DNA from: Penicillus capitatus
Lineage: Eukaryota; Plantae; Chlorophyta
Direction of reading: 5' to 3'
Assembly: GCA_965649825.1 (NCBI GenBank)
Contig: OZ287706.1
Coordinates: 620,001-684,000 of the forward strand
DNA: 64,000 nucleotides
Position 1 is the stretch's first letter; each line of letters opens with the position of its first letter. A program made the translations under genes and the position numbers. Positions 1,120 to 63,868 of this stretch are shown here, in pieces. The notes beneath the pieces were generated by a model. That model saw only the letters and a program-made list of their open reading frames with translations. It was not told the DNA's origin and did not search any database.

Positions 1120-2902
1120 GTTTTGTCGTGCTGCAGAGTCTTAAAAAGTTAGTTGGCGCATTTTCTATAAACGAGCTCACTATTGCTGATGGGACATATG
1201 GTGCCACGCATTCGCGTTCAAGGAGACGACCTTCTCTGAAGCTGTTCATAGACGAAAAGGAAAGACAATCATAATTAACAGCGTTGACAGAAAACGTGCA
1301 TTCTTGGGGATCGGGAAGGCGTCCCCTTTACATCAAGGAATGTTAGTGGACTCTGAACAGCATCTAATCATTCATACCACATGTGCATTGTCCAACATAC
1401 TGTTCACCTTGAGAGACGCATGCCGTTTATTTTTGCGCAAGACGCTTTCCTCTGTGCGTTTATTCAAGGTAGATGATGGATCGTGTTTGTATACACTGGA
1501 TATTGTCGGGGATCGTGTGTAAGAGCAGTTTCTAAGACAGCCGAGTCTTTACGCGCCGATACGACAGAAACACAATCGGATTTGATGCGATACGAACAGG
1601 AGTTATTACAAGGGAGAATGTCCGCCTTATATACCCAGGTTGGTTACAGTTTTCCTAACCTTAGTACCTAACAGTCGTGAACTTCTAGCGCAAGTCGATA
1701 AGCACATGCCTATCGTTATGGGGAAGTTAGCTCGGGAGCCGACATCCGTCGCGACCGATGGTCAGCGCGCCTGGATGGTTAGACTACGGCTCTCCTACTT
1801 CCGGTGGTTTACAGACGGCAGTTAAACGCTACACCTCCTACAGATATCGCTTTGTGTTTTCCAGCATTCTCGGATATGACATTAGTGTGGGGCCGTTGAT
1901 TTGACCCGACAGATTGATAGGATAAACGAAATGACGTTTCGCATTGAAAGGGCAGAATCATTGTATGAAGAACTCCGTTCTTTTTAATCCGCTTCAAGTT
2001 TTAACGTGTGGACCGAGGATGGCCCTCACAACAAGCAAACGAATGCTTCCGTCTGTTAACACACAGCGTCGCGCTGTTGAATGACGATCAGATTGTAAAG
2101 ATTGTTCGCAACGGCAGCTTCTCTGCGAAATGAAGATGACGACATGTCCGTTGTTTACTTGACTGCAACTAAATCGTGATCACAACTGGACTTCATACTG
2201 ATTGAAGAACAAATAGGAGTAAATAACGATCTAGAGAATTCTTGCAAAACGTATGTCGCTTTGTGCCACGAACTGATATTAAGCCATTGCCGAACGAAAA
2301 AAGCAGAGATCCAATTCCTTAAGTGACTAACGAGAGTCTAAAGAGTGGTCTGTCTTCGAGGACAGAGCGAGAAGATAGAACTCTTTTTGTGTAATGTGTC
2401 ATCCAATAAAAATTGCTAGAGCGCTTTTCGAAAGCTTGAGGACACTGGTCGATTTAGTATATAATACAATGCTTCCTAAGGAATGTTCAAAGCAGACGAA
2501 TATCTGAACGACGTGAAACGAGCAAGGTTATTTTCCTGCAGCAACGCGTGCACCGCCCCCTCGCGTCTGTCTATTCTGACGGTGAGTTGGTGTCACGTGA
2601 GTTCCGCTATAAAGTCGCAAGCAGAACGAACGACGTGTTAGCCGGCCCGATCGTGACGGCGGCATCGACTCGAGATATGCGCCTCACCTCCGCGCTGTCA
2701 TCTCTTCTGCCAGGATAGGCAAGCGAAGAACAGAAATTTGCTAAGATGTCTTGTAAAGATGCCAAGTGAGCGCTGTTGAGTGCCAAACTCGGCTTCAGGT
2801 AGCTATCTTAAACGGTCACGTCATAACTTGGCTGGTTGATCGAGAAGTCCAAGGAATAGTTTCGTTTTGAGAATGGAATAAGAGAACAAAAAGACTCGTG
2901 AA

Positions 2903-4706
2903 TTAAACATCGTCGCCTGCACAACGCTGCCGTTCCATGGACTGTCGGACCTTCGCTTTCAGAGAGGCGCTGATCGGGTCATGTTTCTTCGGCAAGGCCA
3001 TCCATCCCTGGCGCACACGGCAACGAATCTCCGAAAACCGTTGCCATTTTAGATCCTCCCGCGGTCGACAGTCGTAAAAGGTGTACAGCAGATTGTCTCT
3101 GGGGCCCACGCCAAGGGCCGGGACGACGGTTGGGATGTCGTGTATGAGTTTCACTGCCAGTTCTCCCGGGAGAGAAAACTTTCCCGAATCGCCCCTGGGC
3201 GTCTTCATGATGTCCTTCGTCGTGCCGTCGGCGAATCTGATGTGCGAGAGCTTAGTGGCAAAGGACAGTATGTCGCGATTGACTTTCTGCAGCAGCCCGC
3301 CTCCCATTCCAAAGGCACAGTTCTGTGCTGTGTAACCCGCGTCCGTCATTTTCTCGAGGACGTCTCTGATTTTGCGCATCGACATTCCATCTCCCTGAAT
3401 CACGCCGCATTGTTTCAATATGCGGTAGCCCTTGGAATTGACCTCCGATCCAAAGACCTTCTCTGCGGCCCTCAACGCCTAAGGCATCGGATAGTGTGCG
3501 ACCTTGGAGCTTTCTTGAAGAAGCGGTTCACCTGGAGAACGGTTTCGACTGGATTTCCAGAGTCTGGTCTGAGAACCATGAATCCTCCTTTCTCGAGTTT
3601 GTGGGTAGCGATCGCGGGGAGAACACTCTCCAATGCATGTACATAGTCATAGCTGTCCAGGACGCAAGAGAACATGCCCGAACCATGACATTCGATCATT
3701 GATAAGAGTGCCGATTTCTCAGAATCCCAAGACGTCATCACACTGTGCTCTGTTGAAGGAATCGATTTCCCAACGGGCTCTCCATTGTTTAGGAAAAACT
3801 GTAGCACGATGTTGGCTCTCTTATTGATTTAACAGTGCCGAACTTGAGCATAGAAAGCAGCTGGCATCGTTGCAGTGCCAGTGAAATTGAGCAGATGCGC
3901 ACAGCCACCCACGATAGCTTGATCTGTTGTTGTGCATCCACGAAATCCAAAGTCGTGTAGACGCGACTCGATGAGGTACTTCGCTTCCGGATCGACCGTC
4001 TCTTCGAAGAAGTACTCGATGAGGTCCCTCGCCCTTCTCGACAGGGTCGCTACGGTTGTTGGATACCAGATCATCGTCAACATCGTCTCCAGAAACGTAC
4101 ACAGCGGCGCGTAGCATCCTTCGGCCGTGATCTAAGGGGAAGCAGTCCTTCCTCGCCCACACAGACGACTGCGGCTCACTTGATAGACAGGGACGTGGGG
4201 GTGTGTGCATGTCCCGTCCTCCAGGGCCTGAAACTTGATGGGAAAGTAGCCTGCAGGCACGGGAGGTCAGTGGATGGTCTCGACGGACAAGCAGCTCTCG
4301 CCGTCGTTCTCCTGGATGAACTTCTCGAAGAGCTCCTTGGGGAAGGGAAACTTCAAGTAGTCCGGCGCCCTGTGCTGCCTGCATCCGAAGTTACTTCGGT
4401 CGCGAGAGTCGTCGATCACTTGAAGAATTCTTCCGACTCTTCGACGTCGCGCATCGTCCACTTTCGATTGAGGACCTGCTCGACGAGAAACCGAACGCCG
4501 AACACGACGATGCGCGTGTCCTCCGTGTCGTTGTCGAATCCCGTGCGGAATTCGCCGTACTACGGAGAATGCGTCGGCACGCAACGAGATGGAGTGTGGC
4601 GGCGCACCGCCACCATCTTCGTGGCCTCGGGGTACTGCTCGAAGTGCGTGGCCTTGTAACTGTCGGCCATGACGCTCAACGGAATCGACTCGGAGAAACC
4701 AAACAT
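2903..4706 (-). CDS. NAMPT: Nicotinamide phosphoribosyltransferase, copy A (spliced)
   Basis: Motifs ADSYKATH, LHDFGFRG, TEHS, LDSYD, LRPDSG, IQGDG, GGGLLQKVNRD; stop TAA at 2903-2905. Confidence 0.9.
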
Positions 4707-4851
4707 GGCTTCGACGATGAAAATGAAACGTGGCCGTCTATCGCTGGATTCTATCCAGAGCAGCGTCGTACATCGCGTGGCCTCTTCAGATCTCACGAGC
4801 TCCCACGGCGAACGCGATCGACTTCGCGAACAGGACTCAAAGAAGCGTTCG

Positions 4852-4945
4852 TTAAGCGTTGAACACTGCCCTTAAAGGAGGGGCACGCATCTGCGTGAAA
4901 TCAAACCGATTATCGAGATCCTCGTCGATTTCGCCAACGATGGTC
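4852..4945 (-). pseudogene. Orphan copy of the last exon of LSM8, carried with the NAMPT duplication
   Basis: Reverse complement of 22662-22755 with a few substitutions (TIVGEIDEDLDNRFDFTQMRAPPLRAVFNA*); the preceding intron is also copied but earlier LSM8 exons are absent. Confidence 0.85.
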
Positions 4946-6029
4946 CTGGACAACCACCTCATCGTGCCATGAAGACATTCCGCATAAATTCCTATACCAA
5001 AAGTGGCCGTTAGAAGCGTGTCGTAATTTATTTGAAGTTGTCATGCCCTTCGTCTACATACAGATGATTAACCAGGAAACAAATATCTTAAATGCAAAGA
5101 CAAATTATGTTTGCAATGGCGACGGTTTCCACAGAACAATGATAAAGCGCATGCTCTCCAGCCATTCTTTGTGCACTGAGACGTGCTTCAATTTTTCATC
5201 GGTCTTCAACCAAACTCCTTTGACATCTACGCTCACTCTTGAGTGCATTGAACACAGCGAAGTGCATAAGACAAACGCACTCTTCTAGCTGCGCCTCACG
5301 CAAGTCTCGATGACTTAGAAGACTGAAAAGGCCTTAAAGCGTTCATTCATTTTTAAAGAGGTCTTATCAGACTTACCAGTAGAGCGTTGAGGCTGCTTTG
5401 GACATGTGATCATTTCTACAGATGTTATTTGATTAGCACCAAAATAGATGCACTAACTACCCTCGACGATTCAAGAACGGAGAGTGGACTTCATCATCTG
5501 ACCGAACATGAGTAAATATCGCCAGCAACGGGAACACTGCTCAGTAGAAGCCTCAAGGAAGTGTTTCGCTGAAGCGCACGAGTCGCTGGGCTTCTTCTTT
5601 CGAACAGCATTTTCTTGTGTATAGCAAACCGTCTAATGCACGCCAAGTCTACCCAAAAGACGCGCGTTCGTATACCCGAGCCACTCTCTTGAGCTCACTG
5701 CTAACTCATTGTCGAACTCTTCTGCATCTATCGAACCACTTGACGGAATGGCGAAGACAAATTCGCCTCCGACTGAAACCGTAGATGCACTATCCTTGTA
5801 ATAACACACCAGAACAGTAGAACGGTCCAGAGCACGACAGGGACGTAACAACAGTTCCTCTAAGTCCCATCAGAATCCCGCGTCCTCGCGTTTCAGTCCA
5901 CACGTGGCATTAACTGCTCCCGTTTGTTACAGTGATTTCCATACTGTTTCCTAGAAGGTATCTGCTTCATCTATAAAGCCGGATAGGAGCGAGGCATTTA
6001 CGCCGTGCAACCGCGTAGTTGTTCGCAAA

Positions 6030-9000
6030 ATGCACCACTACTCTTTCTTCACCTCGCTGCTGGCGTGGACGATCCTAAGCGCAGTATCCGTCGACTGCTC
6101 GGCTGGTGGGTTTCTGCAGTTGCACAACGTGACCGCAACGACGTCGTCTGCTAACGAAACACTATCCTCGGGCTTTTACGCCTCGCCTCAAGTGTCTGCT
6201 ACGGACTTGGGACGCAATGCATCGATCATCGCGGAGGGTCAGACGTTAATGTCCGTCACAGAACACTCACATGCGGCGACTTCTGGCGTTTCAACGATTA
6301 CAGCGAAGCAGCACGTGCCTCATTCCGTTCCGCAGCGTAAAGCGGCCCGTGTGTTGCACCAAGAAGCCATCGTAGACGACGAACCGCCGGAAACAAGTCT
6401 GACGTTTTTGTTCGTTTTCATGCTGCTGGTTGACTCACTCTTTTGTGTCTCCGTGTGACCAGGCGCCGCTTGTTCGCTGCCAAGACGCAGCGTCGACGTA
6501 TACTTAAACCAAACGACGCGCGTGTGGCTCCTTGACCAGACCGTCCTTAATGACATCGAAGACGACGTCCAAGTCATTATCGACTGTACTCGACCTGGCG
6601 ATATCCTTCTGTTCGACACACAGCGACGAATCCGACCTTCGTCGAGCATCGTTCTACGTTGGCCGCTGACTCTGAGTGCTTACGTGGACGAAGCCGAATT
6701 CGAGAAAGGTGATATTCCTCGTTCCAAAAAGAAGGCAGCCTTTACCTGTCCCGACACAACACAGGGGATCTTCTCCGTCAGGTAGGAATCCGCTCTCTAC
6801 TGTCGCGCGTCGAACTCGTGTTCAGATCGGAGAGCGTCGTCTTTGCAAACCTAAAAATCAAAGGCTGTTCGCTGAACGCCTCCGCAGCGTTTGGTGCCAT
6901 ATTCGAAGCGGAGGAATGTCCTCCATCCAATCGCACGAGCAGCATTCAGCTGCACCACGTCAGCTTTAGAAAGAATGTCTTGAACGACGCTGCATGTCTC
7001 AAAATGCGCTCGCCTTCCTGTTCAGCGCTGACGCTGATCGACGTTCAATTCGTGAACAACAGCTGCAGTGGTAGATGCGGTGTCGTCCTGGCCGCCGAGA
7101 ATCGACTTGAGGATGTCCACGTGGACTCCACGCATCTTTCTGACATAGACCGAGTCCAATCGAACGTATTCTACGGTCCTCGGGGCTCACAGATCAATGT
7201 CACTAGGATGGTAGCCACCCATAACGAAGCGGAGATCTTTCGCGTGGAAGGAGGTTCCCTGACACTGATAGAATCTGAGCTGTCGAGCTCCGAGGCCACA
7301 ACGGCAGCGAACCATACACGACAAACTGGTATTTATCTCAAAGATTCCGCCGCCAGAATAGAAAACTGCAAGTTTCGAAACAACAAAGGAGAAAATGGAG
7401 CCGTTCTCTTCGCCGTGCGATCCGTAGTGAACATCTCTGCGTCTTCCTTTGAAAGCAACGTAGCGAAGAGAGGTGGTGCCCTCTGCCTCTCGGAAGACAC
7501 CAGTGCCTCCATATCCAATTGCACGTTCTTGTCGAATGCTGCCTCGGATGGAGATGTCAGTGGCGGAGGCTGTCTGTGGTGCGAGGACGGAACACTGGTT
7601 GTCGCCAACACGACTATGGAGAAGTGCTCGACGTCTGGAGCAGGTGGAGCCATGGTTTTGCACCACACAGTAATGATGTTGTCAGATCTCGAGATCTCAT
7701 CTAGTCGGGCCGGAGAAGATGGCGGCGGGATCTTCATGGCAGACTCGTTCGTAACTGGAACAAGACTGACTCTGAGTGACAACAAGGCTGGCGACGAAGG
7801 AGGCGGCATCTGTATGGAAGACAAAAGTCGTATCTCTGTGACAACTGGAACGATGAGAAACAACAGCGCGCGTTCTGGTGGTGCTGTCTGCGCCAGAACA
7901 GACGTCAGCAGCAGCTTTAGGAACATCCGTTTTCTGGAGAACGCAGCGATGGAGAATGGCGGATCCTTTCGTCTGTACGGATCGACCATGGATGTGAAGA
8001 ACTGCACCTTTGAAAGTGGCCGTGCAGAACACGGAGGATTCATCGCCGCCAGAGACAACGCCGCCATGTCCATCAGCCGCTCAACCTTCAAGAACGGCAC
8101 TGCTCAGTACGGTGGATGCGTGCACATACAACTTGGAAACTGCACTTTCATGGATGTGGACTTTCGAAAGTGTCGTTCCATCATCGACGGTGGAGTGATG
8201 CGCATCGCCAACGCAACTGTCGCGATAACCAACGCAGCTATGATTTCGAACCGTGCGGATGATGATGGTGGATGCGTCTTTGCCGAGTTCTCCGACGTCT
8301 CTGGACGTCAATGGATTGTAGATGACAACAGTGCTGGAGATCACGCTGGAGCTGTCCTCACTAGGTTCTTCTCCAACTTCTCTCTTATCAATGCTACCTT
8401 CAACAGGAGCTCGGCAGACAACGGAGGGGTTGTCTTTTCAGAGTCGAATTCGACTGTGCGCTTTGTGAATGTCTCTTTTCAGAACAGCGATGTGGTCACG
8501 GAAGGCGGCTCTCTTTACATTGACGCATCCAATGCGACATTCCGTGACTGCCGATTCGAGAAAAGCCGGGCAGAGAATGGCGGATTCATCTATGCCAAGA
8601 GGGACTCTTCGATGACCATCGACGCAACAGAGATGACGCGTGGCGATGGAGATCGTGGAGGATGTCTGCGCATGGTCGGAGGGCACTTAGTCGTTCTGAA
8701 CTCGACCTTCCAATACTGTAGATCTTCTGACGACGGGGGCGCCTTGCATCTGATCGACTTGACAGCAGACATCTCAAATTCAAACCTGTCTCTGAATCTT
8801 GCCCTCTCCGGCGGCGCAGTTTTTGCCGAGCACGTGAAACTCGCTGGAAGTGGACTGGTTGTTGAAGACAACAAGGCAGATGGCGTCGGTGGAGCGTTAC
8901 GTTGCGCACAGTCCACGATCAGCGTCAAAAACACTCGATTCCAAAACAATACTGCCACCAATGGCGGTGCCGTGCATCAGATCGCCTCTGCGATAGGGAC

Positions 9001-12000
9001 ATTCGTCAATGTGACCTTCTCGCAAAACAACTGCTCAGAGAACGGTGGAAGCTTGTTTGTGTCCGGTTCTGAGTTGAACATGGCCCGAGCGGAATTCGAA
9101 GATGGCAGGGCTGAAAAAGCTGGTGCGTTTATTGCAACAGCCTCGAACAGCTCAGTCATACTAAAGGACGTACACATGAGAGGCGGCCAGGCGGATAACG
9201 GCGGCGGCGTTCTGATCACGGACTCTTCTTTCGAAGCAAGCAAAATGCAGATCTTGGACTGCGTGGCGGCGTCGAGTGGTGGGGCCTTTCGCAGTGAAAA
9301 CAATCCCACTGTCGCGTGCACGGATTGCAAATTCGAAGGCAATGTCGCGGCTACACACGGCGGAGCATTCTCTTTCAAATCGAGCAACTGCCAACGTCAC
9401 GAGTTCAGACTCCAGAGCTGTCTGATAAGAAACAATACAGCTCAGTATGGAGGTACCGATTCCCACATGATTTCAGGAAGGGGCATCTTCTTTGCAGGAG
9501 GATTGCACTTGATGGACAACCGTCAAGCCTTGGCATGCCCAGACACGCTTTCGCACTCTCCATCCACCATTCTTGTGGACTCAAACTTCTCGAACAACAG
9601 AGCCGAAGAAGCTGGCGGCGCCGTCTTCGTCAGCGATTTCCAGAATCTGCACATCAAGTGTCCATCTGCACAGAAGGCAACGACACGCGTCGGCACGAAA
9701 CGATCGTCGCCGTCACCTCCTAGTATCAATCGAACAAACGGCGGCTGCAGCTCGTGGACAGATAACAAGGCAGAACTTTACGGTAACGATATGGCATCGT
9801 TCGCCTCTCACGTCGTCGGAAGTGTCGAAATCGATAATAGCAGCATTGCCATCTCAGAAAGAGATGACGACTACACCATAGAAGACTACAGAAGTGGATC
9901 CACTTTTCCGATCATCACTCTGCGAGCTGAGGACGATCTTGGCCAAGCGCCAGCTATCGGGAGAGACAGTCGTGCCATCGCCTCTACCGTGTCCTCTCCA
10001 GATCATCTCTTCACAGAGAACCAGAGCCTTCTGCTGTCGTCCGAGAGCGTGGAGCTTCGGAAGACCGAATTCGCGCGGCCTGGCGTGTACACGATCCTCT
10101 TTGAATTCGACGAAGGTCATCTCAATAGCTTCCGACTGAAAGTGATTGTGCAGAGCTGTGGGATCAACGAAGTGCCTTCTGGAAACGGGACATTCTGCGA
10201 AGCATGCAGCGCCGCCGCATTCAATTTCCGTCGGGAAGAGGATGCGGATTGCTCTCCATGTCCCGCGGATGCAAACTGCGAGACTCGAGTGATCCTTCCC
10301 AATAAGGGACACTGGCATCAGACACCCTGTTCAAAGCACATCCAACGATGCATCGCCTCCGAGGCGTGCGACAAGGAAGAACGCATGGGACATTTAAAGA
10401 ACGTCACTAAAGGCATTGAGTCATGCGATTTCGACGAAGAGATGGTCAAGAATTACACAAACGCCCAATGCGAAGAAGTCCGACTCTCTTGTGTTCTCTA
10501 TTATCGTTCTAAGGGTCATGATGGTCTCAGGGACATGAGGGACCCCTTTGTGGATCCTGCAAGGAGTCCTACGGCAGATCCAGATCGCATCTTTGTCAGA
10601 AGTGCTTTCCGCGTTTCGTCAGTCTCGTTCTGGTTTTTCTTTTCTTTCTTGTTTTGATGGCCTTGTCTGGCATTACAATAAGAAGCAATCTCCTTTCCGT
10701 CGTCTCTAAGAAGCAACAGCTACAGATACATCAACTCTCCGTCCTTTCATCCAAAATGATACGCCTTCCAGACGAGGAGAAAATTATAGAGATGGCTGTC
10801 CAGGAACAGGCATCAGAAGAACGGCAGAGACCGGAAAGCAGTCAAACGCATGACATCGATGGTCAAAGTTCTGAGGAGGGCGATCAAACCTCCGAAGAGG
10901 TAGAGCTCGCTAAGTGGAAAGCGATCGAGGTCTTTAAGGTCAGCAGAGCCTGTACACTCTCCAGTCGACGATCCCTATTGCCTTGCAGATTGGCGTCAAC
11001 TTCCTCCAGGTGACTGCCATAGCCATCGCCGTCAATGTGAACTGGAGTCTCAGCATGGAGACGCTCTTCGAAGCGGCAGGTGCGCGAGATTCTATGTCGT
11101 GGTCCGATGCACAAAGGAATTCTGTGCTTTGCAGAGTTCATGAGTGGTATTTCATCCGAAGCCGTCACACGTGCCATTGACTGTCTGGTTCCAGCCAACG
11201 CCGCAGTGGAACGCACTATCATCAGCGCACTTGTCGATGCATCGCACCCACTGGCAGCCATCTTCTCATTCGCCGCCGGCTGGCTCATCATCAAGTTTCG
11301 GCGGGGAAAGGACTGGATGTACCTTATGAAGAAGGTCGTCCTCAGCGCCCTGGTCGTTTTGTACATGACCTACATCTCTCTGAGCAAGGCTTTTCTGAAC
11401 ATCCTGAGCTGCATCGAGGTCCACGACTCCATCGTCGTCGGGAAAGATCGCAAGACAGATTACTGGTCCCTCGACACCAGCGTCGAGTGCTACACAGGAT
11501 CGCACGCTCTACTGGTGGGACTCGTGGGCTGGCCACTGCTCATCGTTTTTACCTTCGGTTTTCCTATGGCCATTGGTTACCTCATTATCAAGAATGTGGA
11601 GGAGGACTACAAGGCAGGATGGATTTATGATGTCTCGGGTTTCCTCTACCGATCCTACAGAAAGAAATTTGTTTTCTGGGAGTCGATGATTATGTTGAGG
11701 AAAGCCGTCCTGGCTGTCGTCGTTGTCTTTTCTTATCCTCTAGGTGTCCATCTCCAGCAGATCCTTGCCGTTTTTCTTTTGATTCTCGCGCTGTACCTGC
11801 AAACTGTCTTACGTCCATATCGTTTTGAATTCGACGTTTTGAATGACATAGAAAGTGCATCTATTCTTGTCTCCTTGGTGACGTTTGTCTCGGCCATCTT
11901 CTTCAGCGAGGATCGTGTTTCTTCTGCTGTCCGTGTCTTGGTAACTCTGTCGGTCATTTTCTGCAACGTTGGCCTCTTCTTGTTCATTTGCATTGTCTTT

Positions 12001-12156: not shown

Positions 12157-12540
12157 ACAGAAACGCTTGACAGTGCTTGCATCTTAGAACTTGCGGTTGT
12201 CTCTACACATACAACGAAGTGGCTATGTCTGATATTATTTGATGTTCTGTGTCTGCCACGCTTTAAAACGGTTGTGTTTTCGGGCTTCCTGATAAGGTGA
12301 GGAATTCAATTTGATCGTGCAGATTGTTTGTGTGACTCACCAACACCTCATCGCCATCAGCTGTTTTTTGCTTTGCACTAGATGTTTTTCATGCACGCAC
12401 GGGATGTTGCAGACTGGGTGTATATAAAGCAATGGATACGATGATGTATATCGACAGAAGTGATTGCCGAGATGAGAGTTCCCGCTTCGTTCGTTTGGTC
12501 CTTCATAAAACGCGATGTCATTCGCGAGATCACGTCGGCA

Positions 12541-12958
12541 GAGTCGTCGTAAATGCACAATGGTCAGTGGACAAAGTCGTCAAAATGTCGTCAACGAAGT
12601 CGTCACCTGTGGGCATACGATGGGGGCGGCAACTTCACGACCGTGGGGATCGACCCGTATGCGGATGGTGCAGTTGGCCAGTTCGAGAAGTACGACCGCG
12701 GGGGTTCGATTCCTGCGCCGGACACAGAGGAGGGTAGTCCCATCAGAGTTGACCCGGATGTGTCTGACGAGCCCGCGCCGAGTTAGAGGGGTTACGGCGG
12801 GGAAAGGACAACGTCGAGCCAGTTCGGGGGCCGACGATGGAGTCACCACCTGGACAAAAACTTTTGTCCTCTTGCCCTTTGATTCTTTTCGCCGCTGAAA
12901 ACAGAGCTGTAAGGATTTCTTTCGTATCCGTCCGAACATTCGCCATCGCGTATCGCGA
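12541..12958 (+). mobile_element. Dispersed tRNA/5S-like composite element, copy 1 (SINE-like or Pol III RNA gene)
   Basis: A box TGGTGCAGTTGG 12666-12677; B box GGTTCGATTCC 12703-12713; 5S loop-C-like TCCCATCAGA 12738-12747; homologous to 55190-55627 and 60431-60857. Confidence 0.65.
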
Positions 12959-14689
12959 AAAGCAGGATTTTTTAGACGAACTAGACTCCGTTCTGCGTTT
13001 ACAGTCGTTCGTTTAGAACGCACATAAATTCGACTGCAGGTTCCATTCCGTTTTTTCTCTTTAGTTGCGATTTCGTCTAGCAATTTGGTGGAAATCGGCC
13101 GAAGGGCGAATTTCCAAAGAGTCTTTGCTTGACGTCTCATGTTTGAGCAACTCTGAGTGTCTCTGAGAAACGATCCTGAAGCATACATACCCTTGATGAC
13201 TTCAATATCGAACTTTCTGTCGTTACCCATTTAGTTTTAGTATCGACAGCTTCTATCGTGAAGGATCAAACTCGTACGCTTTTGATTCCTCGTGAAGAAA
13301 GCAGATTCCTTTGACATGAGGCATGAACTCTGTTTTGGCTCGTACAAGCGTGCCTTATGCACAGCACTTGCAGAAATCTTTGAAAAAAGCAGTCAACCAT
13401 TGTCCAGTCTGCTATCGCGATTCAATCTATTGAGTGGCTGAATGTTTCAGCCGTGTTGTCCACCACAAACGCACGACGCTTTTTTTTTGTACAAAACGAT
13501 GTACAGCTCGCAGAAACTGCGCCTGTTATCATTTCTCTTTGACAGTCAGTTTACTGCAGCAGCATCCCCCGTCTCGTAGTATTTTTGTGCAACGCGTCAT
13601 ACGTGTTGTCATCGAATCGTGGTTATCACTACAGGAGTACAGGTTGCATCAAACATGGGTCGTGCCGTAGCCACCACCTCAACACTTTCTTCTTTTAGAC
13701 CTCTTTTTGGAGTATGTATGCAAAAGTTTACGTTACATCTTGTTTGGCGTTTTGTAGCGATGTCTGCATACGGGACAACTTTATTGGAGAATAACGGACA
13801 GCCAACTGGTTATCACTACTCTTTCTTGAGCATGAGTCCCCAATGCTCAACGCTCTCGAGACGCACAGCCAAACGCAGGACGAACTGACCGCTTATGTGC
13901 ACCGCCTTCGTCGTCGTCCAAATCCACACCGAAAGAAGCCAACGCTGGTCATACCGCAAAAAGATAACGCATCTATCTGAAAACGCCGTGTTTGCCCCTC
14001 TAACAAGCAAAAAAGTCTACGGATTGAACGATGCTCTTCAAAAAATCCAATACAGACAACATTCGACAGAAGAAATCAGCCGATTAAGAACGGGACAGGA
14101 GGAAATGTTACGATGCATCCTAACAACTGAACAATCGCCTTTCGACATCGTGCACATCCAGAGGCGTTCCGGCAGATGTCCTTCCTTACAGACGACGTTC
14201 ACTTGAAAACAGCAGCGCCGCCAAAGAAGAGCGCAAACATAGAGACACAAACCAAGCAGAGTCTACACCGCAATGCACGTAGGGACGATTTCCCCTGACC
14301 TCTCTCCTAATACTCCGTGCGGATAGTCGGTCTCGCATCTCCTCGGACAGTATCCAGCCGTGGGTGGGCCCATTGTTAATCTCTCGTTACATGACGGTGA
14401 CGTCGTTGCACCACTGTTTATGGGTGGGTACAATAATCGTAAACCCGATACAAGTATTGTGTTTTTTCGCGGATATATATATGCTCAACAGCATTCAGTT
14501 CTACGAACGATTCTTCCGACACTGGAAAAACCAACGGGAATTTATACAATCCGAACCGCTCATGATATATCCAGCCACGGCCAATGACACTTACGCATCA
14601 GCATATGTTTTCCAGCCCCAACCTCATACCCCTATCCATGAGACTTGTTTTTTCAATGCAACAAAAACAATGCAGAAAAACAAATGACA

Positions 14690-22248: not shown

Positions 22249-22755
22249 ATGGCGGCAGGCACAGTGGAACTCACGCCTTTCATTGATAGTACTTAAGCAC
22301 TTCGACGTCGACATCCGGTTCGGCACCGCCGTGTAGGTGTCGTTTGCGTCCTGACGAATGACGGAAGAATTATTGTTGTGAGCGGCAATCTCGACCTACA
22401 GCGGACGGAGGAGCGTCGTGTGCTGTGGTAGGGCTATCTGCGTGGATTCGATCAGATGACGAATCTGGTCTTGACAGAATGCCACGAACGGGTCTTCTCA
22501 ACAGAAGTGAGTAACGGGCGCTCACCACTAAGACGTTTGAGAGATGCTGTGCCGCAGAGCGGCGTGGAGCAGGTTGCACTGGGAACATATCTCGTCCGAG
22601 GAGACAACGTGTAAGGAATGCACACAGAATGTCTTCATGGCACGATGAGATGGTTGTCCAGGGCCATCGTTGGCGAAATCGACGAGGAGCTCGACAATCG
22701 GTTTGATTTCACGCAGATGCGTGCCCCTCCTTTAAGGGCAGTGTTCAACGCTTAA
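22249..22755 (+). CDS. LSM8: U6 snRNA-associated Sm-like protein LSm8
   Basis: VCVLTNDGRIIV/GTLRGFDQMTNLVLTECHERVFST/SGVEQVALGTYLVRGDNV/AIVGEIDEELD. Confidence 0.9.
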
Positions 22756-22807
22756 CGATCGCTTCTTTGAGTCTTGTTCGCGCAGTCGATCGCGTTCGCA
22801 AAGAGCC

Positions 22808-24760
22808 ATGCAGATCGGACGCGTTGTCGCTCGGCGATGCCTTTCGGTCACTTTCGCCGTGGGAGCTCGTGAGATCTGAAGAGGCCACGCGATGTACGAC
22901 GCTGCTCTGGATAGAATCCAGCGATAGACGGCCACGTTTCATTTTCATCGTCGAAGCCATGTTTGGTTTCTCCGAGTCGATTCCGTTGAGCGTCATGGCC
23001 GACAGTTACAAGGCCACGCACTTCGAGCAGTACCCCGAGGCCACGAAGATGGTGGCGGTGCGCCGCCACACTCCATCTCGTTGCGTGCCGACGCGTTCTC
23101 CGTAGTACGGAGAATTCCGCACGGGATTCGACAACGACACGGAGGACACGCGCATCGTCGTGTTCGGCGTTCGGTTTCTCGTCGAGCAGGTCCTCAATCG
23201 AAAGTGGACGATGCGCGACGTCGAAGAGTCGGAAGAATTCTTCAAGTGATCGACGACTCTCGCGACCGAAGTAACTTCGGACGCAGGCAGCACAGGGCGC
23301 CGGACTACTTGAAGTTTCCCTTCCCCAAGGAGCTCTTCGAGAAGTTCATCCAGGAGAACGACGGCGAGAGCTGCTTGTCCGTCGAGACCATCCACTGACC
23401 TCCCATGCCTGCAGGCTACTTTCCTATCAAGTTTCAGGCCCTGGAGGACGGGACATGTACACACCCCCACGTCCCTGTCTATCAAGTGAGCCGCAGTCGT
23501 CTGTGTGGGCGAGGAAGGACTGCTTGCCCTTAGATTACGGCCGAAGGATGCTACGCGCCGCTGTGTACGTTTCTGGAGACGATGTTGACGATGATCTGGT
23601 ATCCAACAACCGTAGCGACCCTGTCGAGAAGGGCGAGGGACCTCATCGAGTCCTACTACGAGGAAACGGTCGATCCGGAAGCGAAGTACCTCATCGAGTC
23701 GAGTCTGCACGACTTCGGATTTCGTGGATGCACAACAACAGATCAGGCGATCGTGGGTGGCTGTGCGCATCTGCTCAATTTCACTGGCACAGACAACATG
23801 GCGGCGGCTTACTATGCTCAGGTACATCTTACGTGTAACCAAAGATGGTCTATGTTCTGAGGGCAGTTTCATTTGAATTTCGGCGAGCCGATTGGAAGTT
23901 CTATTCCTGCCACCGAACACAGTGTGATGACGGCTTGGGATTCAGAAGAATCTGCTATAATTAATGTGATCGAACGCTATGGCAATGGTCTTTTTGCATG
24001 TGTCCTGGACAGCTATGACTATACACATGCATTGGAGAGTGTTCTCCCCGCGATCGCTACCCACAAACTCGAGAAGAGAGGAATCATGGTTTTGAGACCG
24101 GACTCTGGAGATCCAGCCGAAACCGTTCTCCAGGCGAGACGCCCCTCAGGATCCGAGGTAGTCGCAGACCGTTTGATGCTTTAGGCATTGAAGGCTGCAG
24201 AGAAGGTCTTCGGATCAGAGGAGAATTCCATGGACTACCGTTTCCTGAGAAGATGCAGCGTGATCCAGGGAGATGGAATGTCGTTGAGCAAGATCAGAGA
24301 CGTCCTCGAGAAAATGACGGACGCGGGTTACACAGCACAGAACTGTGCCTTTGGAATGGGAGGCGGGCTGCTGCAGAAAGTCAATCGCGACACACTGTCC
24401 TTTGCCACTAAGCTCTCGCACATCAGATTCGCCGACGGCACGACGAAGGACATCATGAAGACGCCCAAGGGCGATTCGGGAAAGTTTTCTCTCCCGGGAG
24501 AACTGGCAGTGAGACTCATACACGACATCCCAACCGTCGTCCCGGCCCTTGGCGTGGGCCCCAGAGACAATCTGCTGCACACCTACTACGACTGCCGACC
24601 TCGGGAGGATATAAAATGGGAACGCTTCTCTGACATCCGCCGTCATGTGAACAGAGAATGGAGATATCTGCCGAGGAAACACGATCCGATCAGCAAGTCG
24701 TTGAAGACAAAGATCCAACAGCATATGGAACAGCAGCAGTCTGCCGATGCCACTGTTTAG
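22808..24760 (+). CDS. NAMPT: Nicotinamide phosphoribosyltransferase, copy B (ATG 22808 with a candidate targeting exon, or ATG 22959)
   Basis: Same motifs as copy A, including NFTGTDN with the Asp219 equivalent. Confidence 0.9.
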
Positions 24761-24787
24761 TTTAATTTCAGATCGTATCTTTCTTGT

Positions 24788-35040: not shown

Positions 35041-35415
35041 CATATCTCGAAAACACATATGCAATAGCTCTCTCTGACGCTGATGATGATCTCGCGCCCT
35101 CGCCCGATCGCAACGAAGGCGTCGACGCACGAATCGCTCTCTGCTATTAACGATGGCGTTGTGCTGCTGCCTGGGGGTGTCGTGAGTCGTTATGGTGATT
35201 CGACGGGAGGAGATCTGTGGAGCTCGGTGGTTTGCGCTTTTCTGTGTGACGACTTTGTCGACGCGGGTCCTTTGTCGTACCGTTGTGTACCTTCCAGCTC
35301 AGCCGTCGCATCATGTCCAAGAGAGCTGCGGTTTCCTGTTCTGTGTTCTCGGCATCGCGACAGCGGCGCGCGCTTTCATTTTTCCCACGGCGACGCACGT
35401 CGCGTCACAACATCG

Positions 35416-37012
35416 ATGAGCGCAGAGGAGAAGAAATCTTCGGAATTCGTCATCCAACCGACGAAGACCGTCCCGAAACTGGACACGTCCAAGTGGCCAT
35501 TGCTGCTCAAGAACTACGATCAGCTTCTCGTGCGAACGGGACACTACACACCGATTCCCTGCGGCCGAACGCCGTTGCGAAGATCGCTACCGGACTATAT
35601 CAAATACGGCTGCCTTAATCTCGACAAGCCTTCCAATCCGTCATCCCACGAGATCGTGGCGTGGACGAAACGCATTCTTCGTGTGGAGAAGACGGGACAC
35701 AGTGGGACACTGGATCCCAAAGTGACGGGCTCGCTGGTGATCTGCATCGAGAGAGCGACACGACTGGTGAAGGCGCAACAGGGAGCAGGCAAAGAATACG
35801 TATGCCTGGCGCGTTTTCATGCCAAAGTCCCCGGCGGCGCCGCCGAAGTCACACGTGCTCTGGAGAAACTCACGGGTAAAGTGGGTCTGAACCATGGGTC
35901 AGATATGGACATCGGCCGTGTCTGCTGCATAGGTGCCGTTTTTCAGCGACCGCCTTTGATCTCCGCCGTCAAACGACAGTTGCGTGTGCGGACGATTTAC
36001 AAGATGACGCTGTGGGAGTACGATGAAGACAAGAATTTGGCACTCTTTTGGGTTTCGTGCGAAGCCGGCACGTATATCCGGACGCTCTGTGTACATCTGG
36101 GTCTGATCCTTGGCGTCGGCGGCCATATGGAAGAACTCCGTCGCGTCCGCAGCGGCATTTTGGGTCGATCTGATCATCCAGGCAAAGATCTCGATCGCCA
36201 AGGCGTGTGCATTTCTAGGCGAGCGAGACAATATGGTGACCATGCACGATGTGCTGGATGCTCAGTGGCTGTACGATAATTTCAAAGACGATAGCTATCT
36301 GCGACGCGTCGTCATGCCACTCGAGGTGCTGTTGACGAATTACAAACGTATCGTTGTGAAAGACAGCGCCATTAATGCCTTGTGCTACGGCGCCAAGTTG
36401 ATGGTCGTGGGCGTCCTGCGCTATTCGGCGGACATCGAAGTGGATGACGAACTCGTGCTGATGACGACCAAAGTTCAATGCGCTGTCCGTCTCCCGAGGC
36501 GATCGGCGAATTCCGTGTAGGGCGAGGCGATCGCATTGGGCATTGCCCAGATGAATAGTGCTGTTATCGCGACGGTCGATCATGGCTGTGCAGCGAAGCT
36601 CAAGAGGGTGATCATGGATCGCGATACCTATCCTCGCAAGTGGGGATTGGGCGTCTACGCTCAGCGCAAGAAGCAGATGATTGCAGAAGGCCTGTTGGAT
36701 AAACACGGCCGTCCGAATGACAAGACGCCGCCGGAATACCTGCGCGCGATCGTTCCGGAGAACGTCCCTGTCAAACAGGAACAGATGGACGTCGTTCAGG
36801 AGGAGGAGAAAACAGAGAAGAAGCCAAAGAAGCGCAAGAACGAAGAGACAGAGCCATCGCCGAAGAAACCCAAAAAGAAAAAAGAAAAGAAATCGGCGGA
36901 GCCAGATGGCGGCGGCGAGATCGAAAGCAAACGGAAGAAACAAAAGAAAGAAAGCAAGCAGAAGAAAGAAAAGAGCGAAGGGGCCGCGACAGGAACAGAC
37001 GTCGGTGTTTGA
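35416..37012 (+). CDS. CBF5: H/ACA RNP pseudouridine synthase dyskerin
   Basis: [34 protein letters not shown] domain, Lys-rich tail. Confidence 0.95.
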
Positions 37013-43309: not shown

Positions 43310-43850
43310 CATCGCGATGATGCAAAAAGAACTGGCCTCCCGACTAAGGAGAGCCATCTTCACAGAAACGTTAGAAGATAGGGCAGCATTCGACAAGAAC
43401 GTGCAATTGGATATGGAGGCACTGGTGCCTTCCGAGAGGTAGAGGGCATCACCTCTCTTAGCTACGTTTCTTTTAAAAGAAGACGCAGTGATGTTCATTA
43501 TGGATCACAAGGAGAAGAGAACGGCTCCATCTTCTCCTTTGCTGTTTCGAAACGTGCAGTTTTCTATTCTGGCGACAGAATTTTTGAAATGAACGCCGGC
43601 CCGTCGTGAATGTTCGTTGCCGTTGAGGCCGAGACGCGACATTTCAAATTCTATCAGCATCAGGGCGCTTCCTTCCACGCGAAAGATCTCCACAAGGACA
43701 TCGCCAGGTCAAGTGCAGTTGACAAGATTTGGACGCCGTCTTCTGTGCCATTAAAGACGGTCTGGTCAAGGAGCCACACTCAGATCGTTTCGTTTGAGTA
43801 CGTGTCGACGCTGCGTCTTGATAGCGAACACCGAGGCGAATTGTACGACA
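43310..43850 (-). pseudogene. Internally deleted, decayed fragment of the PMP-like surface-protein family
   Basis: Reverse complement aligns to 6470-6607 and then jumps to about 7230-7545; contains an in-frame TGA. Confidence 0.8.
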
Positions 43851-54835: not shown

Positions 54836-55189
54836 GGATATTTACGCTTACTTGTGTGGACATACAATTCGACTTTCAAGTTTATAGTTGTTCGTCTTGG
54901 TATCTCGCGGACATTCGCCACTTTGCAACAGACACAAAAAAGCGTGTGTGACCTACTCGCATGAAAACCTCCAAAAATAGCTCGACGCAGGCCACTTTTA
55001 TGGTCTCTCCTTCTATTGTTGAAGAAGAAGTCATCGCGTGTCAGAATACACCTTTAGGAGTGAACGGAGACGTTTTGAATTCGGAGAGATGAAAGAACGG
55101 ACAGGATCCTGCAAAGGTTGTCAACAGTCGTCGCGTTCGTGCGTCTTTAGGCGTCAGAGTCGCTGTTTAAGAACGGCAGTCAGACTTCA

Positions 55190-55627
55190 AAGTCGTCGAC
55201 AAGAGTCGTCAGCAAAGTCGTCACGGACGCACGGAAGGAGGCGAAGTGGCACCAGAGTCGTCAGCGAAGTCGTCACCTGTGGGCATACGATGGGGTCGGC
55301 AACTTCTCGACCGTGGGGATCGACCCGTATGCGGATGGTGCAGTTGGCCAGTTCGAGAAGTACGACCGCGGGGGTTCGATTCCTGCGCCGGACACAGAGG
55401 AGGGTAGTCCCATCAGAGTTGACCCGGATGTGTCTGGCGAGCCCGCGCCGAGTTGGATGGGTTACGGCAGGGAAAGGACAACGTCGAGCCAGTTCGGGGG
55501 CCGACGACGGAGTCACCACCCGGACAAAAACTTTTGTCCTCTTGCCTTTCGATTCTTCTCTCCGCCGAACACAGAGCTGTAAAGAGTTCTTTCGTATCCG
55601 TCACGTGCGCCACCGTCGCGTATCGCT
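55190..55627 (+). mobile_element. Dispersed tRNA/5S-like composite element, copy 2
   Basis: A box 55336-55347, B box 55373-55383, TCCCATCAGA 55408-55417. Confidence 0.65.
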
Positions 55628-57358
55628 CAACGTAGTTGTTTGCTCGTTTGATCCTACTCTGTTCTTAGTTTACAGGCGTCCTGTTGTATAGCAACTTCCG
55701 GGGTTAGACGAATCAATGCGAAGACGTAGTTCTAGCTGTGTCGCCTCGTTGAATGCGCTCGCAGCCGTGTGTCCCCTGAATGACCGTAAAGCGAGTTTCA
55801 CGATATCTTTTTTGCGCAGCCTGCCCATGCTAGTATGGATGGTTTCCGGCATTCAACTTCTTCTCTTATCCAAACGAGCAAACGCAGTCCTCGAGAAGAA
55901 TCTCGCTACAGCAGCAGAAAGAAAGGATTCTGGCGTATGATCAATCAACAGACGTAGTAGACGAAGAAGCTTTTCGCCTGTTGCCGTTAAAAGCCACGGA
56001 AAGACCACTTTTGCCTTACAGACTGAGGGAAAAAGATGTCGACAGTGCTACTCGTTTCGCGTGCACACGTGACTACCGGCCACCAGAGGTCGGACAGTGA
56101 AGGAGAAGTGTGACAAACCGCAATGCTTTGGATATGGGCCTCATCGAGGCTCCACTTTGAGCCAGCTGCAGTCGCCACGCAAGCCTGCTTTGTGGATTCT
56201 GCTTAAACGGATGCCCGAGACAAAGATCTGTTATCTTTGTATCACGCTGGAGTGCGATTGCTGTTTCTTTGTCCTCGCACGATGCGTTTCGAATCTGAGA
56301 TGAACGAGCTGCCGGCAGTCTGAGACGCGAGAATACCGTTAGGCATCCAGAAGAGACGCTTTTCTGACCCCCAGTTGCTCATGCTGCTGTACTTGGCCGT
56401 TTCTTAGCGTCAACTCCGAACATCTACCCCATTCTGCCGATCGAGTGACGACTGAGATGCATAGCTGTCAGTGATGCCTGCTTTGAAGACATGTCTGCAC
56501 TCGCTTGACCTCATGGTGCTCGCCTTCTGTCATCTGGATGTTCCCGGATCCTCCTCTCATCGACCTAGAGGGCCTTGGACCCACCATAGGAATTCCGGCC
56601 AGTGACCAACACGAAGTGCAGGTCGTGCGTGATTTGGCTTGAATTCGCTTCCTCTGTCTACGAGGCCTCTTCGACGGGGGATGGGTCATGTCACCTAGGA
56701 GATACTCTCTTTCTGTCTGTGAGCCTTGCAACAGGCAGCTTCCTATCCCTCGAGTGATGGTGTCGACGCAGACAAAGCATCCATCGCGAAACTGTGAGAA
56801 TCTGTCGCGATTACCATCTGCTCGTGGCGTCGTGCTGCATTACACGGCACGGTGCCTTTCTCATACCTGCTCGACTGAGAGATCGCACACGAGAGTAGAC
56901 GACAGAAACTGCTCGAATTGGAGGATTTCCACGTGAGCGGCATTGTTTAAGTGCATTCTCCTACGAGCATTCGACTGAAGCGGACCTCAAAGCAGGTCCC
57001 GCGGCAGCCGCTGATCATTGACTTTCCTGCAAGGGGAATGGATTGCCAAGTTTGCAGTAGAGGATATCTTTTTAATTTTAGCGAGAATGGGAGAAAGACT
57101 TAAAATTTAGTGTTCGTTAAAGCTTAGTGTTCGTTACGGACAGTCACAATGAAAATGTGCTCTTCTTATAGCCATAACCACACAAATATCGTTCTCTTCA
57201 AAAAAGCAAAACGGCGGCCATTGAAGAAACGTGTGAGTGAGTAGGTACGTCTAGTGATTTATTCTAACAGCGATCGGATGGAATGTTCGACCGTTAGACA
57301 CATCAAAGGCATAACAAGCGCAGTAGTCGGTGGTGGAGTTCAATACTGTCTCGCGTGG

Positions 57359-58456: not shown

Positions 58457-60430
58457 CGGCTCAGAACGTATTGCTGACTGTGGGACCTCACGCACTGCAA
58501 CCATGCATCTCTCGCACAAAGGCCAATGGAGTCATCTTCCGCAACGAACGCCAATGGGGTCATGAAAATGACGTCGACTGTTAGCTTCAATAGGAGAGGA
58601 TTTTCGAGGATGAGGCGAGAAGAGGTCATACCTGCGACTGTAGGAACATCGACTGACAAGACGTCTCTTCCATTCTGGCATAGAGCTGCGTTCGCTACTC
58701 AGAGCCGAGTGGCAGTTCCTGAGGGAGAGATTCAAAAGCACGAGATCGACCACATCGAAACGACACGAACGATTGGCCAATCGATTGTGCGATATGGTCC
58801 AGGTCGAGTCGTACGACAAAGGCAGGCATGGAGTGCTTCGTGACCACCGCCTGAAAATCTCGTCATGACTATTGGCGAAATAGATGACTCGATGGAACGT
58901 CGCCGCAGCGTGTAGCCGTTTTCCAAGTCGCTTGTGCCATTTTTATCCCTATGTCGACCTCACGCCGACTCTTCGTTTTGCTGCTGCTGTGCCTCTTGCT
59001 GCTGTCGTCGACCGTCTACTGTCGACGTCCGTTATACATCTCCCGCGACGTGCTCACTTTGGCTCTTCATGTTCTGCAGGTAGCAGTCGTTCCACGACAA
59101 GACGGGCACGTTATATTCCGCCTCGAAAAACATACGTGCACCAAACGGAGGAAGACACAGAGCCCAGTCCGAGCGTCAAAAACGAAACCGCTTCCTTCAC
59201 GTCTCCACGCATCGATGAGAACATCATCATCGGAGGCGCGTTCAAGAGTCGCAGAACACCACCCCCTTCAATGGATTCTCGTCGTTGGGGGACGATTCGC
59301 AAAGGTGCGCTTGAATCTGCTAGGTCGTTCTGAAGGAAATGGGAGACATGAGTTTGTGCTGTGGGCAGTCGAAGAGAGGTTCGAAAAGCCCAACACAGAG
59401 TCGATGGGACACATGACTCCGCACTAGAATTCGCTCCCAACACAACTGAGTATTCTGCATTACTCCCGTTTTCTTTGCTGTCTTCCATTATCTGTCTGAC
59501 ATTTACGTCTAGTCTCGGTCGGCATCCTTAAGGGATGCTGACACGAACATCCTTAAGTTGGCTTTCTCCAGGTGATTTGTCTGTTTGCGCACGTATAGAA
59601 AACATTACTTCGCCATGAAAACGTCAAATCGTGCTCATAAGTTTTTCTTGTGAGACAACTGTTCGCAAAGAAGAGGTTCCACCTCAGATGCGGCGAATCT
59701 TGTAAACCCCATACTTTCCTTTTAAAAAGCTCACTATGTCCTTATATTGTGTCCCCGCACAAAGATTGAAATTGGCAGTTGATGTGACTGCTATCGTCGG
59801 CCATCGTTGCGTTCTGCTCGTCGTCTTTTCGTTGATGGGACAGACGAGTGTCAAGCGGAAGCGTGCTCAAGAGAGTTCTTCACAAACAGTAAAAATCCAA
59901 CTCACAAGAACTGCAAAAGCGCATCACCCGACTAGACCAAGTGCATTTTGTGCAGTAAGAAGAGCTGTTTTATGTTGGATTATGCAGAAGGAAAGAATAA
60001 GACCAAGTTTCCAGTGAGCATCTTCTCTAGGAGAGAGATACAGAAAACGATCGACAGAGGTGTCGCTGCGAATCGTTGACCCAACGTGAGAGAGATGTAC
60101 CCAATGCGTCATTGCTAGTTTCTGTTTAATCCGAACGATGCCCAGCTATATGGGAAGTGAAGTGTAAGGAAACAACTTTGTAAAGATAAACTGTTTAAAA
60201 ACTTTCTGAAGCAAAAAGACATGCTTTGAAGCACACAAGATTGTGGTATTCGTCACCATCTCCAAAGGTTTAGCGTCGTTTCGACACCAGAGGATGTAAC
60301 TCTTCAGCCAACGAGCTGACCATAGAGCCACTAAACTAGAATAGACGGTCACTAGAAAACAGGCCCCGAACAAGGCTACTACGCACATAATAGCGGCTAC
60401 CTACCTGCTCAGAAACCGTTCTTCGATGTG

Positions 60431-60857
60431 CTCGACAAGTCGTCAGCAAAGTCGTCACGGACGCACGGAAGGAGGCGAAGTGGCACCAGAGTCGTCAGCG
60501 AAGTCGTCACCTGTGGGCATACGATTGGGTCGGCAACTTCACGACCGTGGGGATCGACCCGTATGCGGATGGTGCAGTTGGCCAGTTCGAGAAGTACGAC
60601 CGCGGGGGTTCGATTCCTGCGCCGGACACAGAGGAGGGTAGTCCCATCAGAGTTGACCCGGGTGTGTCTGGCGAGCCCGCGCCGAGTTGGATGGGTACGG
60701 CGGGGAAAGGACAACGTCGAGCCAGTTCGGGGGCCGACGATGGAGTCACCACCCGGACAAAAACTTTTGTCCTCTTGCCCTTCGATTCTTTTTGCCGCCG
60801 AAAACAAAGCTGTAAGGATTTGCTTTCGTGTCCGTCACGTTCGCCGCCGTCGCGCAA
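60431..60857 (+). mobile_element. Dispersed tRNA/5S-like composite element, copy 3
   Basis: A box 60570-60581, B box 60607-60617, TCCCATCAGA 60642-60651, T-run near 60788-60793. Confidence 0.65.

Positions 60858-61888: not shown

Positions 61889-63868
<1,980 letters not shown>

Follow-up and report, generated by a model that had tools for sequence, protein, structure and literature searches.

Vault RNA, 7SL RNA and EBER genes have hybrid RNA polymerase III (Pol III) promoters, in which internal A and B boxes are combined with upstream elements. The Class I RNAs of Dictyostelium, which are about 40–65 nucleotides (nt) long, are associated with an upstream element (DUSE), and their function was long obscure. 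Here we analyze an element that occurs three times within a 64,000-nt stretch of the green alga Penicillus capitatus (GenBank assembly GCA_965649825.1, contig OZ287706.1, positions 620,001 to 684,000 of the forward strand; hereafter the window, to whose numbering all coordinates without a contig label refer). A preliminary description of this DNA had read the element as a tRNA-type Pol III promoter fused to a unit with the size and fold of 5S ribosomal RNA (rRNA), and had offered two interpretations, a tRNA-5S composite short interspersed element (SINE) or a dispersed family of Pol III RNA genes that possibly encode a variant 5S. Both ingredients have precedents: SINEs derived from 5S rRNA are known as SINE3 (Kapitonov and Jurka, 2003, as cited in PMC3531059), and the dicistronic genes of Yarrowia consist of a complete functional tRNA followed by a canonical 5S (PMC2566860).

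The element resembles the vault, 7SL and EBER genes in having A and B motifs near its 5′ end, a required-looking upstream element near −60 and a 3′ T run, and in being a multi-copy sequence whose predicted product is a structured RNA of a few hundred nt. It differs from them in matching no Rfam family, in the placement of its B box at +43 with ~150 nt of conserved body after it, in an upstream element that takes the form of a phased array of AGTCGTC motifs, and in a copy number much above the usual. The likeness to the Dictyostelium Class I RNAs is one of analogy only (lineage-specific, dispersed, multi-copy small structured RNAs with a conserved motif ~60 nt before the start), whereas those RNAs are much shorter, are without A and B boxes and belong to an unrelated lineage. 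As in the Yarrowia tRNA-5S genes, the units are dispersed and tRNA-type boxes would lie upstream of a second RNA of at least ~120 nt, but neither part is recognized here by tRNA or 5S models. We class the element with dispersed small-RNA genes of a known kind, those that combine internal Pol III-type boxes with an upstream element.

Our favored reading is a dispersed, lineage-specific and concertedly evolving multigene family for a structured non-coding RNA of ~205–225 nt, encoded on the + strand and equipped with a putative Pol III promoter, partly upstream and partly internal, and we give this reading as a whole about an even chance of being right. Transcription itself would probably be by Pol III, judging from the arrangement of sequence motifs. 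The second interpretation in the preliminary description is thereby kept in so far as it named a family of this kind with a constrained core and promoter-like boxes; the variant 5S is not.

Copy Number and Distribution

A repeat search of the window returned a 300-nt direct-repeat family with three members on the same strand (12587–12886, 55257–55556 and 60491–60790; copies w12k, w55k and w60k), and the block 12638–12757 (120 bp) proved, exactly as first described, to be the longest with full identity across all three. A wider alignment extended the homology from about −150, in the AGTCGTC array, to about +345, at GTTTACAG, relative to the start of the conserved core. Extra copies were gathered by searching two translations of the element against a protein collection, which gave 14 clusters, all from ENA, whose contigs were fetched as L002–L011; such spurious proteins are called from the element because it is GC-rich and open in several frames (three in one subfamily). 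With a family profile, nhmmer found 18 full-length copies in ~290 kb. The 15 beyond the window's three, which lie in the same and a related genome, put the multi-copy element originally reported far beyond chance. L002, L003, L008, L009 and L010 hold two copies each, and L004, L005, L006, L007 and L011 one each.

Fifteen copies, including those of the window, belong to ENA assembly ERZ25074695 (assembly 1), and three, on L008 and L011, to ERZ26696514 (assembly 2), from a related green alga. All relatives found came from these two assemblies, and searches of JGI metagenomes, IMG/VR and GTDB genomes gave no exact matches to conserved 20–26-mers or to a two-motif pattern. L004 is a haplotype of the window (98% identical) and L010 a haplotype of L009 (96–97% identical); for pair counts, the 18 copies represent 17 distinct sequences.

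At least eight copies lie on the 954-kb contig of ERZ25074695 that carries the window's dyskerin open reading frame (ORF). The units, 320–520 bp long, are interspersed and non-tandem, are spread over several contigs at distances from 5 kb to hundreds of kb, and occupy intergenic DNA near genes. Copies are often paired at 5–9 kb in direct, divergent or convergent orientation (window 55331/60565; L002 743/10105; L003 1128/10228; L008 3798/10045; L009 10183/17591), far closer than the mean spacing on the 954-kb contig. In the ~290 kb, even nhmmer --max found no truncated or decayed copy. One weak nhmmer match at L004:4617–4676 (E = 0.003), which covers the part with the B box and hairpin A, contains a GACTC/GAGTC hairpin and lies just inside a long terminal repeat (LTR) retrotransposon next to its LTR, does not have the strand that a common 3′ end would require; it is probably due to chance.

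A Constrained Core Kept Uniform Among Copies

All copies share a core of ~205 nt that runs from GCGGATGG to CAAAAACTTTT. It occupies 12661–12865 on the + strand in w12k (205 nt), 55331–55535 (+) in w55k, the window copy nearest to the family consensus, and 60565–60768 (+) in w60k (204 nt, one nt being missing from the near-invariant loop of hairpin B). Stretches of 20–28 nt within the core, predicted loops included, are invariant. It also has dispersed indels of 1, 2 and 5 nt, and because these are not multiples of three the core is not coding; no Pfam matches to ORFs of the element were found, and a protein-coding exon was rejected on these two grounds. One subfamily, which includes all three window copies, has in common a further ~140 nt on the 3′ side that ends in GTTTACAG (12866–13004 in w12k and 55536–55675 in w55k; the extension of w60k, 60769–60905, runs to CTTTACAG; all on the + strand) and is 60–78% identical between paralogues. 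This extension also holds GTAAGG...TTTACAG, for which a splice-site reading was not adopted.

The preliminary description had taken a conserved core between divergent flanks as a sign of functional constraint, and alignments of paralogous and orthologous segments support it. L002 is an old segmental duplicate of window 54.8–63 kb, located ~80 kb upstream on the same contig. Between w60k and L2a, identity is 98.5% in the core, 92% in the preceding 60 nt, 85% in the array, 60–70% further upstream, 78% in the 3′ extension and 39% beyond; for w55k and L2b the corresponding values are 99, 98, 76, 55–60, 61 and 35%. At an orthologous locus of the two algae that adjoins a GST gene (L3a vs. L8a), identity is 83% in the core, 76% across the GST region, which is mostly coding, and at most 58% in the flanks. 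Paralogues are thus far more alike than orthologues while their flanks are at least as diverged, which argues for within-genome homogenization by gene conversion besides selection. The extent of the shared sequence also varies from pair to pair, as fits conversion tracts and not a transposon with fixed ends.

Promoter-Like Motifs and a Putative Terminator

An A-box-like motif, TGGTGCAGTTGG, stands at +6 and a B box, GGTTCGATTCC, at +43, separated by 25 nt (12666–12677 and 12703–12713 in w12k, where the B box matches the consensus perfectly; 55336–55347 and 55373–55383 in w55k; 60570–60581 and 60607–60617 in w60k; all +). Both had been placed correctly in the preliminary description, and both are nearly invariant across the 18 copies: GATGGTGCAGTT of the A-box-like motif is present in 18/18, with L11 having A for G in the final GG of the motif, and GGTTCGATTCC is exact in 13/18, the remaining five differing by one base each. 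In the 64 kb of the window, the B-box pattern GGTTCGANTCC occurs only at the three copies, against 0.15 expected. An A box followed by a B box near the 5′ end is the arrangement of a type 2 (tRNA-like) Pol III promoter. L8 and L11 show strong change in the spacer between the boxes, and the would-be T-stem is not preserved; nearly fixed boxes around a changing spacer form the pattern of promoter elements read as DNA.

Several AGTCGTC motifs precede every copy, one subfamily being without the proximal pair. They recur at −63, −75, −86, −115/−118, −127/−130 and −140 in most copies of both algae, in steps of ~11–12 nt, and we know of no promoter in which this motif has been described. The array of w12k spans 12542–12605 (+), with motifs at 12542, 12575 and 12598, that is, −119, −86 and −63 from the core start; that of w55k spans 55126–55274 (+; motifs at 55126, 55191, 55204, 55216, 55256 and 55268), and that of w60k 60438–60508 (+; motifs at 60438, 60450, 60490 and 60502). 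AGTCGTC is otherwise almost absent from the window, and seven of its eight AAGTCGTCA sites lie upstream of the three copies (0.9 expected). Directly upstream of the most divergent copy, at L011:10434–10540, is a perfect 22-bp tandem repeat (4.9 units) with AGTCGTC in each unit; the upstream arrays are themselves homogenized. The proximal region between array and core, −55 to −1 (12606–12660, +, in w12k), may be promoter or 5′ leader; it is 92–98% kept between paralogues and 53% between the two algae.

At the other end, a T4 run falls at one aligned site (+200 to +207) in 15/15 copies of assembly 1, and in several copies the similarity ends abruptly right after it. In w12k this candidate Pol III terminator closes the invariant CAAAAACTTTT (12855–12865, +), and in w55k the T run lies at 55532–55535.

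The head of the element, with its two boxes, is not a true tRNA. ARAGORN found no tRNA genes in the window, the Rfam tRNA model gave no match to the head even at E ≤ 10 (12450–13050), and D-stem, T-stem and acceptor pairings were absent on inspection. The head is identical at 46/63 positions (73%, z = 3.7) to a tRNA-like gene at L002:10770–10840, and at 36/65 (z = −0.4) to the tRNA-Gln gene of L007; a tRNA-derived origin of the head is plausible from such sequence likeness. The L002 gene, which lies 450 nt downstream of an element copy, scores 40.7 bits with the Rfam tRNA model, is missed by ARAGORN and has an odd anticodon loop, GGUUUUC.

Fold and Strand

Three local hairpins follow the B box on the + strand. 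Hairpin A (12718–12767 in w12k, 55388–55437 in w55k, 60622–60671 in w60k), which had been described as helices II and III of a 5S fold, has the form CCGGACACA...GGG...CCC...TGTGTCTGG. Hairpin B (12772–12802, 55442–55472, 60676–60705) pairs CCC(G)CGCCG with CGGCGGGG around a 14-nt loop, AGUUGGAUGGGUUA, and hairpin C (12812–12836, 55482–55506, 60715–60739) pairs CGUCG-A-GCC with GGC-CGACG and includes the 3′ strand of the proposed 5S helix I. Across copies, 98.5% of cells in this three-hairpin model are paired; 0/500 shuffles equaled it in pairing or in covariation score, and with slid controls pairing did not exceed 47%. In hairpin A, 98.7% of cells are paired, with AU→UA in L7 and L11 and GU↔GC swaps. 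Hairpin C is paired in 100% of cells, shows CG→UG→UA at one pair, and carries the family's variable A/C on a bulge. Hairpin B is 96% paired without compensation, its loop being invariant except in w12k, w60k and L6. Covariation among copies, proposed in the preliminary description as a check of the 5S fold, is thus present as two compensatory pairs in hairpins A and C and lacking in helix I.

G.U pairs occur at two positions, in 12/17 and 4/17 distinct sequences, and would be A.C on the opposite strand, so the RNA is of + sense. Folding energies compared with shuffles gave z = −2.3 for a 118-nt piece starting at the B box and z = −1.1 for the whole 221 nt. A long rod fold proposed by RNAalifold, in which a 5′ arm pairs with a 3′ arm, is not upheld by L8 and L11, where one arm changes without the other, and was rejected on that ground.

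Under the RNA-gene reading, TFIIIC-type recognition of the internal A and B boxes would place Pol III a few nt upstream of GCGGATGG, while a factor would bind the phased AGTCGTC sites on one helix face, ~60 nt and further upstream. These sites, about one helical turn apart and with the proximal one at −63, could form the upstream half of a hybrid promoter. The transcript may end at or near CAAAAACTTTT, a proposal that the second alga weakens, and would fold into at least three local hairpins, in part borne out by the pair changes above. Its head would probably be tRNA-derived and its body something other than 5S rRNA, and the copies appear to be kept alike by gene conversion, to which the paralogue and orthologue alignments are an indirect witness, together with purifying selection.

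Weighing the Alternatives

A variant or derived 5S body fused to a tRNA-type promoter, either as a tRNA-5S composite SINE or as a Yarrowia-like gene with TFIIIA-independent 5S expression, is largely refuted and seems to us extremely improbable. A plant-type 5S is expected in a green algal host, and the element carries the 10-mer TCCCATCAGA, GGATGGGT and GGGAA in plant-type 5S order, a likeness that serves as a lead only. The 118-, 118- and 117-nt units of the preliminary description (12703–12820, 55373–55490 and 60607–60723) are present with the sequences and complementary segments given there, and the 118-nt piece folds somewhat better than its shuffles. Global alignment of this unit with Arabidopsis 5S, likewise a lead only, gave z = 2.7 with 15/1000 shuffles as good, and the same procedure gave z = 15 for plant vs. 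human and z = 3.9 for plant vs. E. coli 5S. Against these points, the 5S covariance model RF00001 gave no match to the window at gathering score, nor at E ≤ 10 to 601 nt (12450–13050) or 136 nt (55365–55500), searches whose E ≤ 10 results do contain chance matches of 6–16 bits to other families. Helix I (GGTTCGAT/GTCGAGCC) has a U.C mispair in 7/17 distinct sequences without any compensatory change, and its 3′ strand finds a better partner in hairpin C; because that hairpin runs 16 nt past the end of the 118-nt unit, the unit is not a natural one, and its boundaries disagree with those of the conserved RNA. The helix II/III arm does stand as a hairpin with one compensatory pair, but such a hairpin is not specific to 5S. 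GGATGGGT lies in a loop and not in helix IV, and GCGAG is not conserved in the second alga. Unlike 5S genes, the element has a putative promoter of tRNA type and not of type 1, and its head is not a functional tRNA, unlike that of the Yarrowia genes (PMC2566860). We rejected 5S rRNA on the Rfam searches at three scales, the marginal alignment and the pair counts; what the element shares with 5S rRNA and 5S SINEs is a few short motifs in order and one hairpin resembling helix II/III, and 5S identity, 5S size and 5S fold are not supported.

We consider it unlikely that the family represents a mobile element, whether a tRNA-derived SINE or a non-autonomous element of another type, maybe with a few master copies and a core that looks conserved through recent amplification. 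Such a reading would account for a short interspersed multi-copy repeat with subfamilies, a tRNA-like head with A and B boxes and a body of obscure origin, all features of tRNA-derived SINEs in SINEBase, whose definition of a short (<1 kb), interspersed, non-tandem repeat describes the element well (PMC3531059). SINEBase also asks for identity of 60% or more to tRNA, 5S or 7SL RNA across 60 nt or more (PMC3531059), a level that the comparison with the L002 tRNA-like gene nominally reaches (46/63) and that with the tRNA-Gln of L007 does not (36/65). Among recent pairs, L3a/L3b (97.5% identical across 319 nt) and L9a/L9b both end abruptly at the T run. Retroposition, however, leaves an A-rich or simple-repeat tail, target-site duplications and unrelated 5′ flanks. 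No poly(A) or simple-repeat tail follows the element, inspection of the two youngest pairs revealed no target-site duplications, and the limits of shared sequence vary by pair; at every copy ~150 nt upstream are kept with phased AGTCGTC motifs, and a retroposed Pol III transcript cannot carry upstream sequence. Old segmental duplicates and an orthologous locus carry the element at matching positions, and in them the core has diverged far less than the flanks; three allelic comparisons gave no presence/absence difference of the element, although an insertion polymorphism would have been visible, as it is for an LTR retrotransposon present in only one haplotype of the same stretch. The conserved upstream DNA and position, and the lack of a tail, of target-site duplications at those two pairs and of truncated or decayed copies, thus speak against an ordinary SINE and against the composite SINE of the preliminary description. 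A third account, in which the family is a cis-acting DNA module without a stable RNA, for example a TFIIIC-bound boundary or a promoter cassette with an array of factor sites, is in our estimate quite improbable. It would suit a B box kept as sequence and not as a T-arm, phased and tandemly homogenized upstream motifs of protein-binding type, invariant 20–28-nt stretches that extend into predicted loops, and the intergenic position of copies near genes. Compensatory and wobble-intermediate changes in two hairpins, with strand-specific G.U pairs, point instead to selection on RNA, and the strongly conserved sequence past the B box, at ~150 nt, is longer than a TFIIIC site requires.

Several points nevertheless weigh against the favored reading, a family of structured RNA genes. 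Comparison of the copies establishes the family, its limits and constraint, its non-coding nature, two of the hairpins and the strand, but the polymerase, the RNA ends, expression, abundance and the cellular role are inferred. The evidence for the fold is modest: only two compensatory pairs were found, each possibly a single event, variation is low, and shuffles can be outscored by related sequences even when these form no structure. The head fails with both ARAGORN and the Rfam tRNA model, and its 25-nt gap between A and B boxes is, to our knowledge, shorter than in any tRNA gene. All three assembly-2 copies have CTATT at the T4 site, with the next T4 at +229 or +280, so that the terminator reading is not conserved. 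The region from −60 to −1 is also conserved, with one possible compensatory pair; the 5′ end of the RNA may therefore lie further upstream, in poor agreement with a type 2 promoter. Loci were retrieved through the element itself, and the sample is thus biased toward conserved copies. Finally, w12k (at 12767, 12785 and 12788) and w60k each have changes of their own at positions invariant elsewhere in the family, which may mean that some copies are decaying, and the alleles w60k and L4 differ at ~7 core positions, no fewer than in their flanks.

Other candidates were set aside more directly. The w55k and w60k copies, 5.2 kb apart, are not the two LTRs of a retrotransposon, with no gag or pol between them and other pairs inverted or convergent. 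SRP RNA, RNase P/MRP, U3, telomerase, vault and Y RNAs, hammerhead and H/ACA RNAs gave no Rfam matches, and their motifs do not fit on inspection. An omega-RNA-like guide scaffold with variable 3′ guides was rejected because the 3′ flank is conserved within a subfamily and no nuclease ORF is adjacent.

Genomic Neighborhood

ORFs in the window encode dyskerin, an F-box/LRR protein, a Kelch protein and a class II aminoacyl-tRNA synthetase fragment taken as lysyl-tRNA synthetase. The nearest named homologue of the dyskerin is from Caulerpa lentillifera (83% identity over the conserved part), with other green algae at ~71%; on this one protein the host was placed among ulvophyte (Bryopsidales-like) green algae. 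The dyskerin gene is called as two overlapping ORFs (35083–36279, DKCLD/TruB_N; ~36230–36520, TruB_C/PUA), which implies that either a short intron or a frameshift lies near 36.2 kb. The segmental duplicate L002 includes another lysyl-tRNA synthetase-like gene (L002:8135–9373, 82–88% identical to window 62438–64000), which has the opposite orientation relative to the neighboring element copy.

The haplotype L004 contains, at 4407–9364 (window 59885–59890), a 4.95-kb Ty3/gypsy-type LTR retrotransposon with identical 205-bp LTRs and ORFs for RVT_1, rve and aspartic protease; as the window lacks it, this is an insertion polymorphism between haplotypes. At L004:14771–20444 the lysyl-tRNA synthetase region is joined to an inverted copy of window 36.7–42.4 kb (42352–36683, 98.8% identical), which suggests that a large inversion or rearrangement distinguishes the haplotypes, or that the junction arose in assembly. 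Within the window, 2901–4993 and 22614–24762 form an inverted duplication of ~2 kb (86–97% complementary, 18–20 kb apart) that overlaps ORFs such as 23006–23920, and 6471–7543 and 43382–43830 are inverted repeats (84–88%), one arm of which lies over the start of a 1279-aa ORF with Chlam_PMP repeats (6818–10657).

Significance

No Rfam family matched the element, at gathering score on the window or credibly at E ≤ 10 on the 601- and 136-nt pieces, and a limited search of the literature found no similar element. More tentatively than for the RNA-gene family as such, we suggest that it may encode an undescribed abundant structural RNA of ulvophyte (Bryopsidales-like) green algae, part of a lineage-specific ribonucleoprotein (RNP), driven by a new hybrid promoter that combines the phased AGTCGTC array with A and B boxes and kept uniform by concerted evolution over dozens of dispersed genes. 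That the RNA might serve as the scaffold of such an RNP is a guess, made because its long invariant loops suggest protein binding or base pairing. The case also carries a caution, in that a few short 5S-like motifs and a hand-drawn fold failed both a covariance-model test and a comparison across copies. If expressed, the family would be a new structured non-coding RNA absent from Rfam in the poorly studied giant-celled green algae, and would offer a readable promoter architecture and a clean case of concerted evolution among dispersed small-RNA genes; the AGTCGTC array could in turn serve as a candidate small-RNA promoter for these algae.

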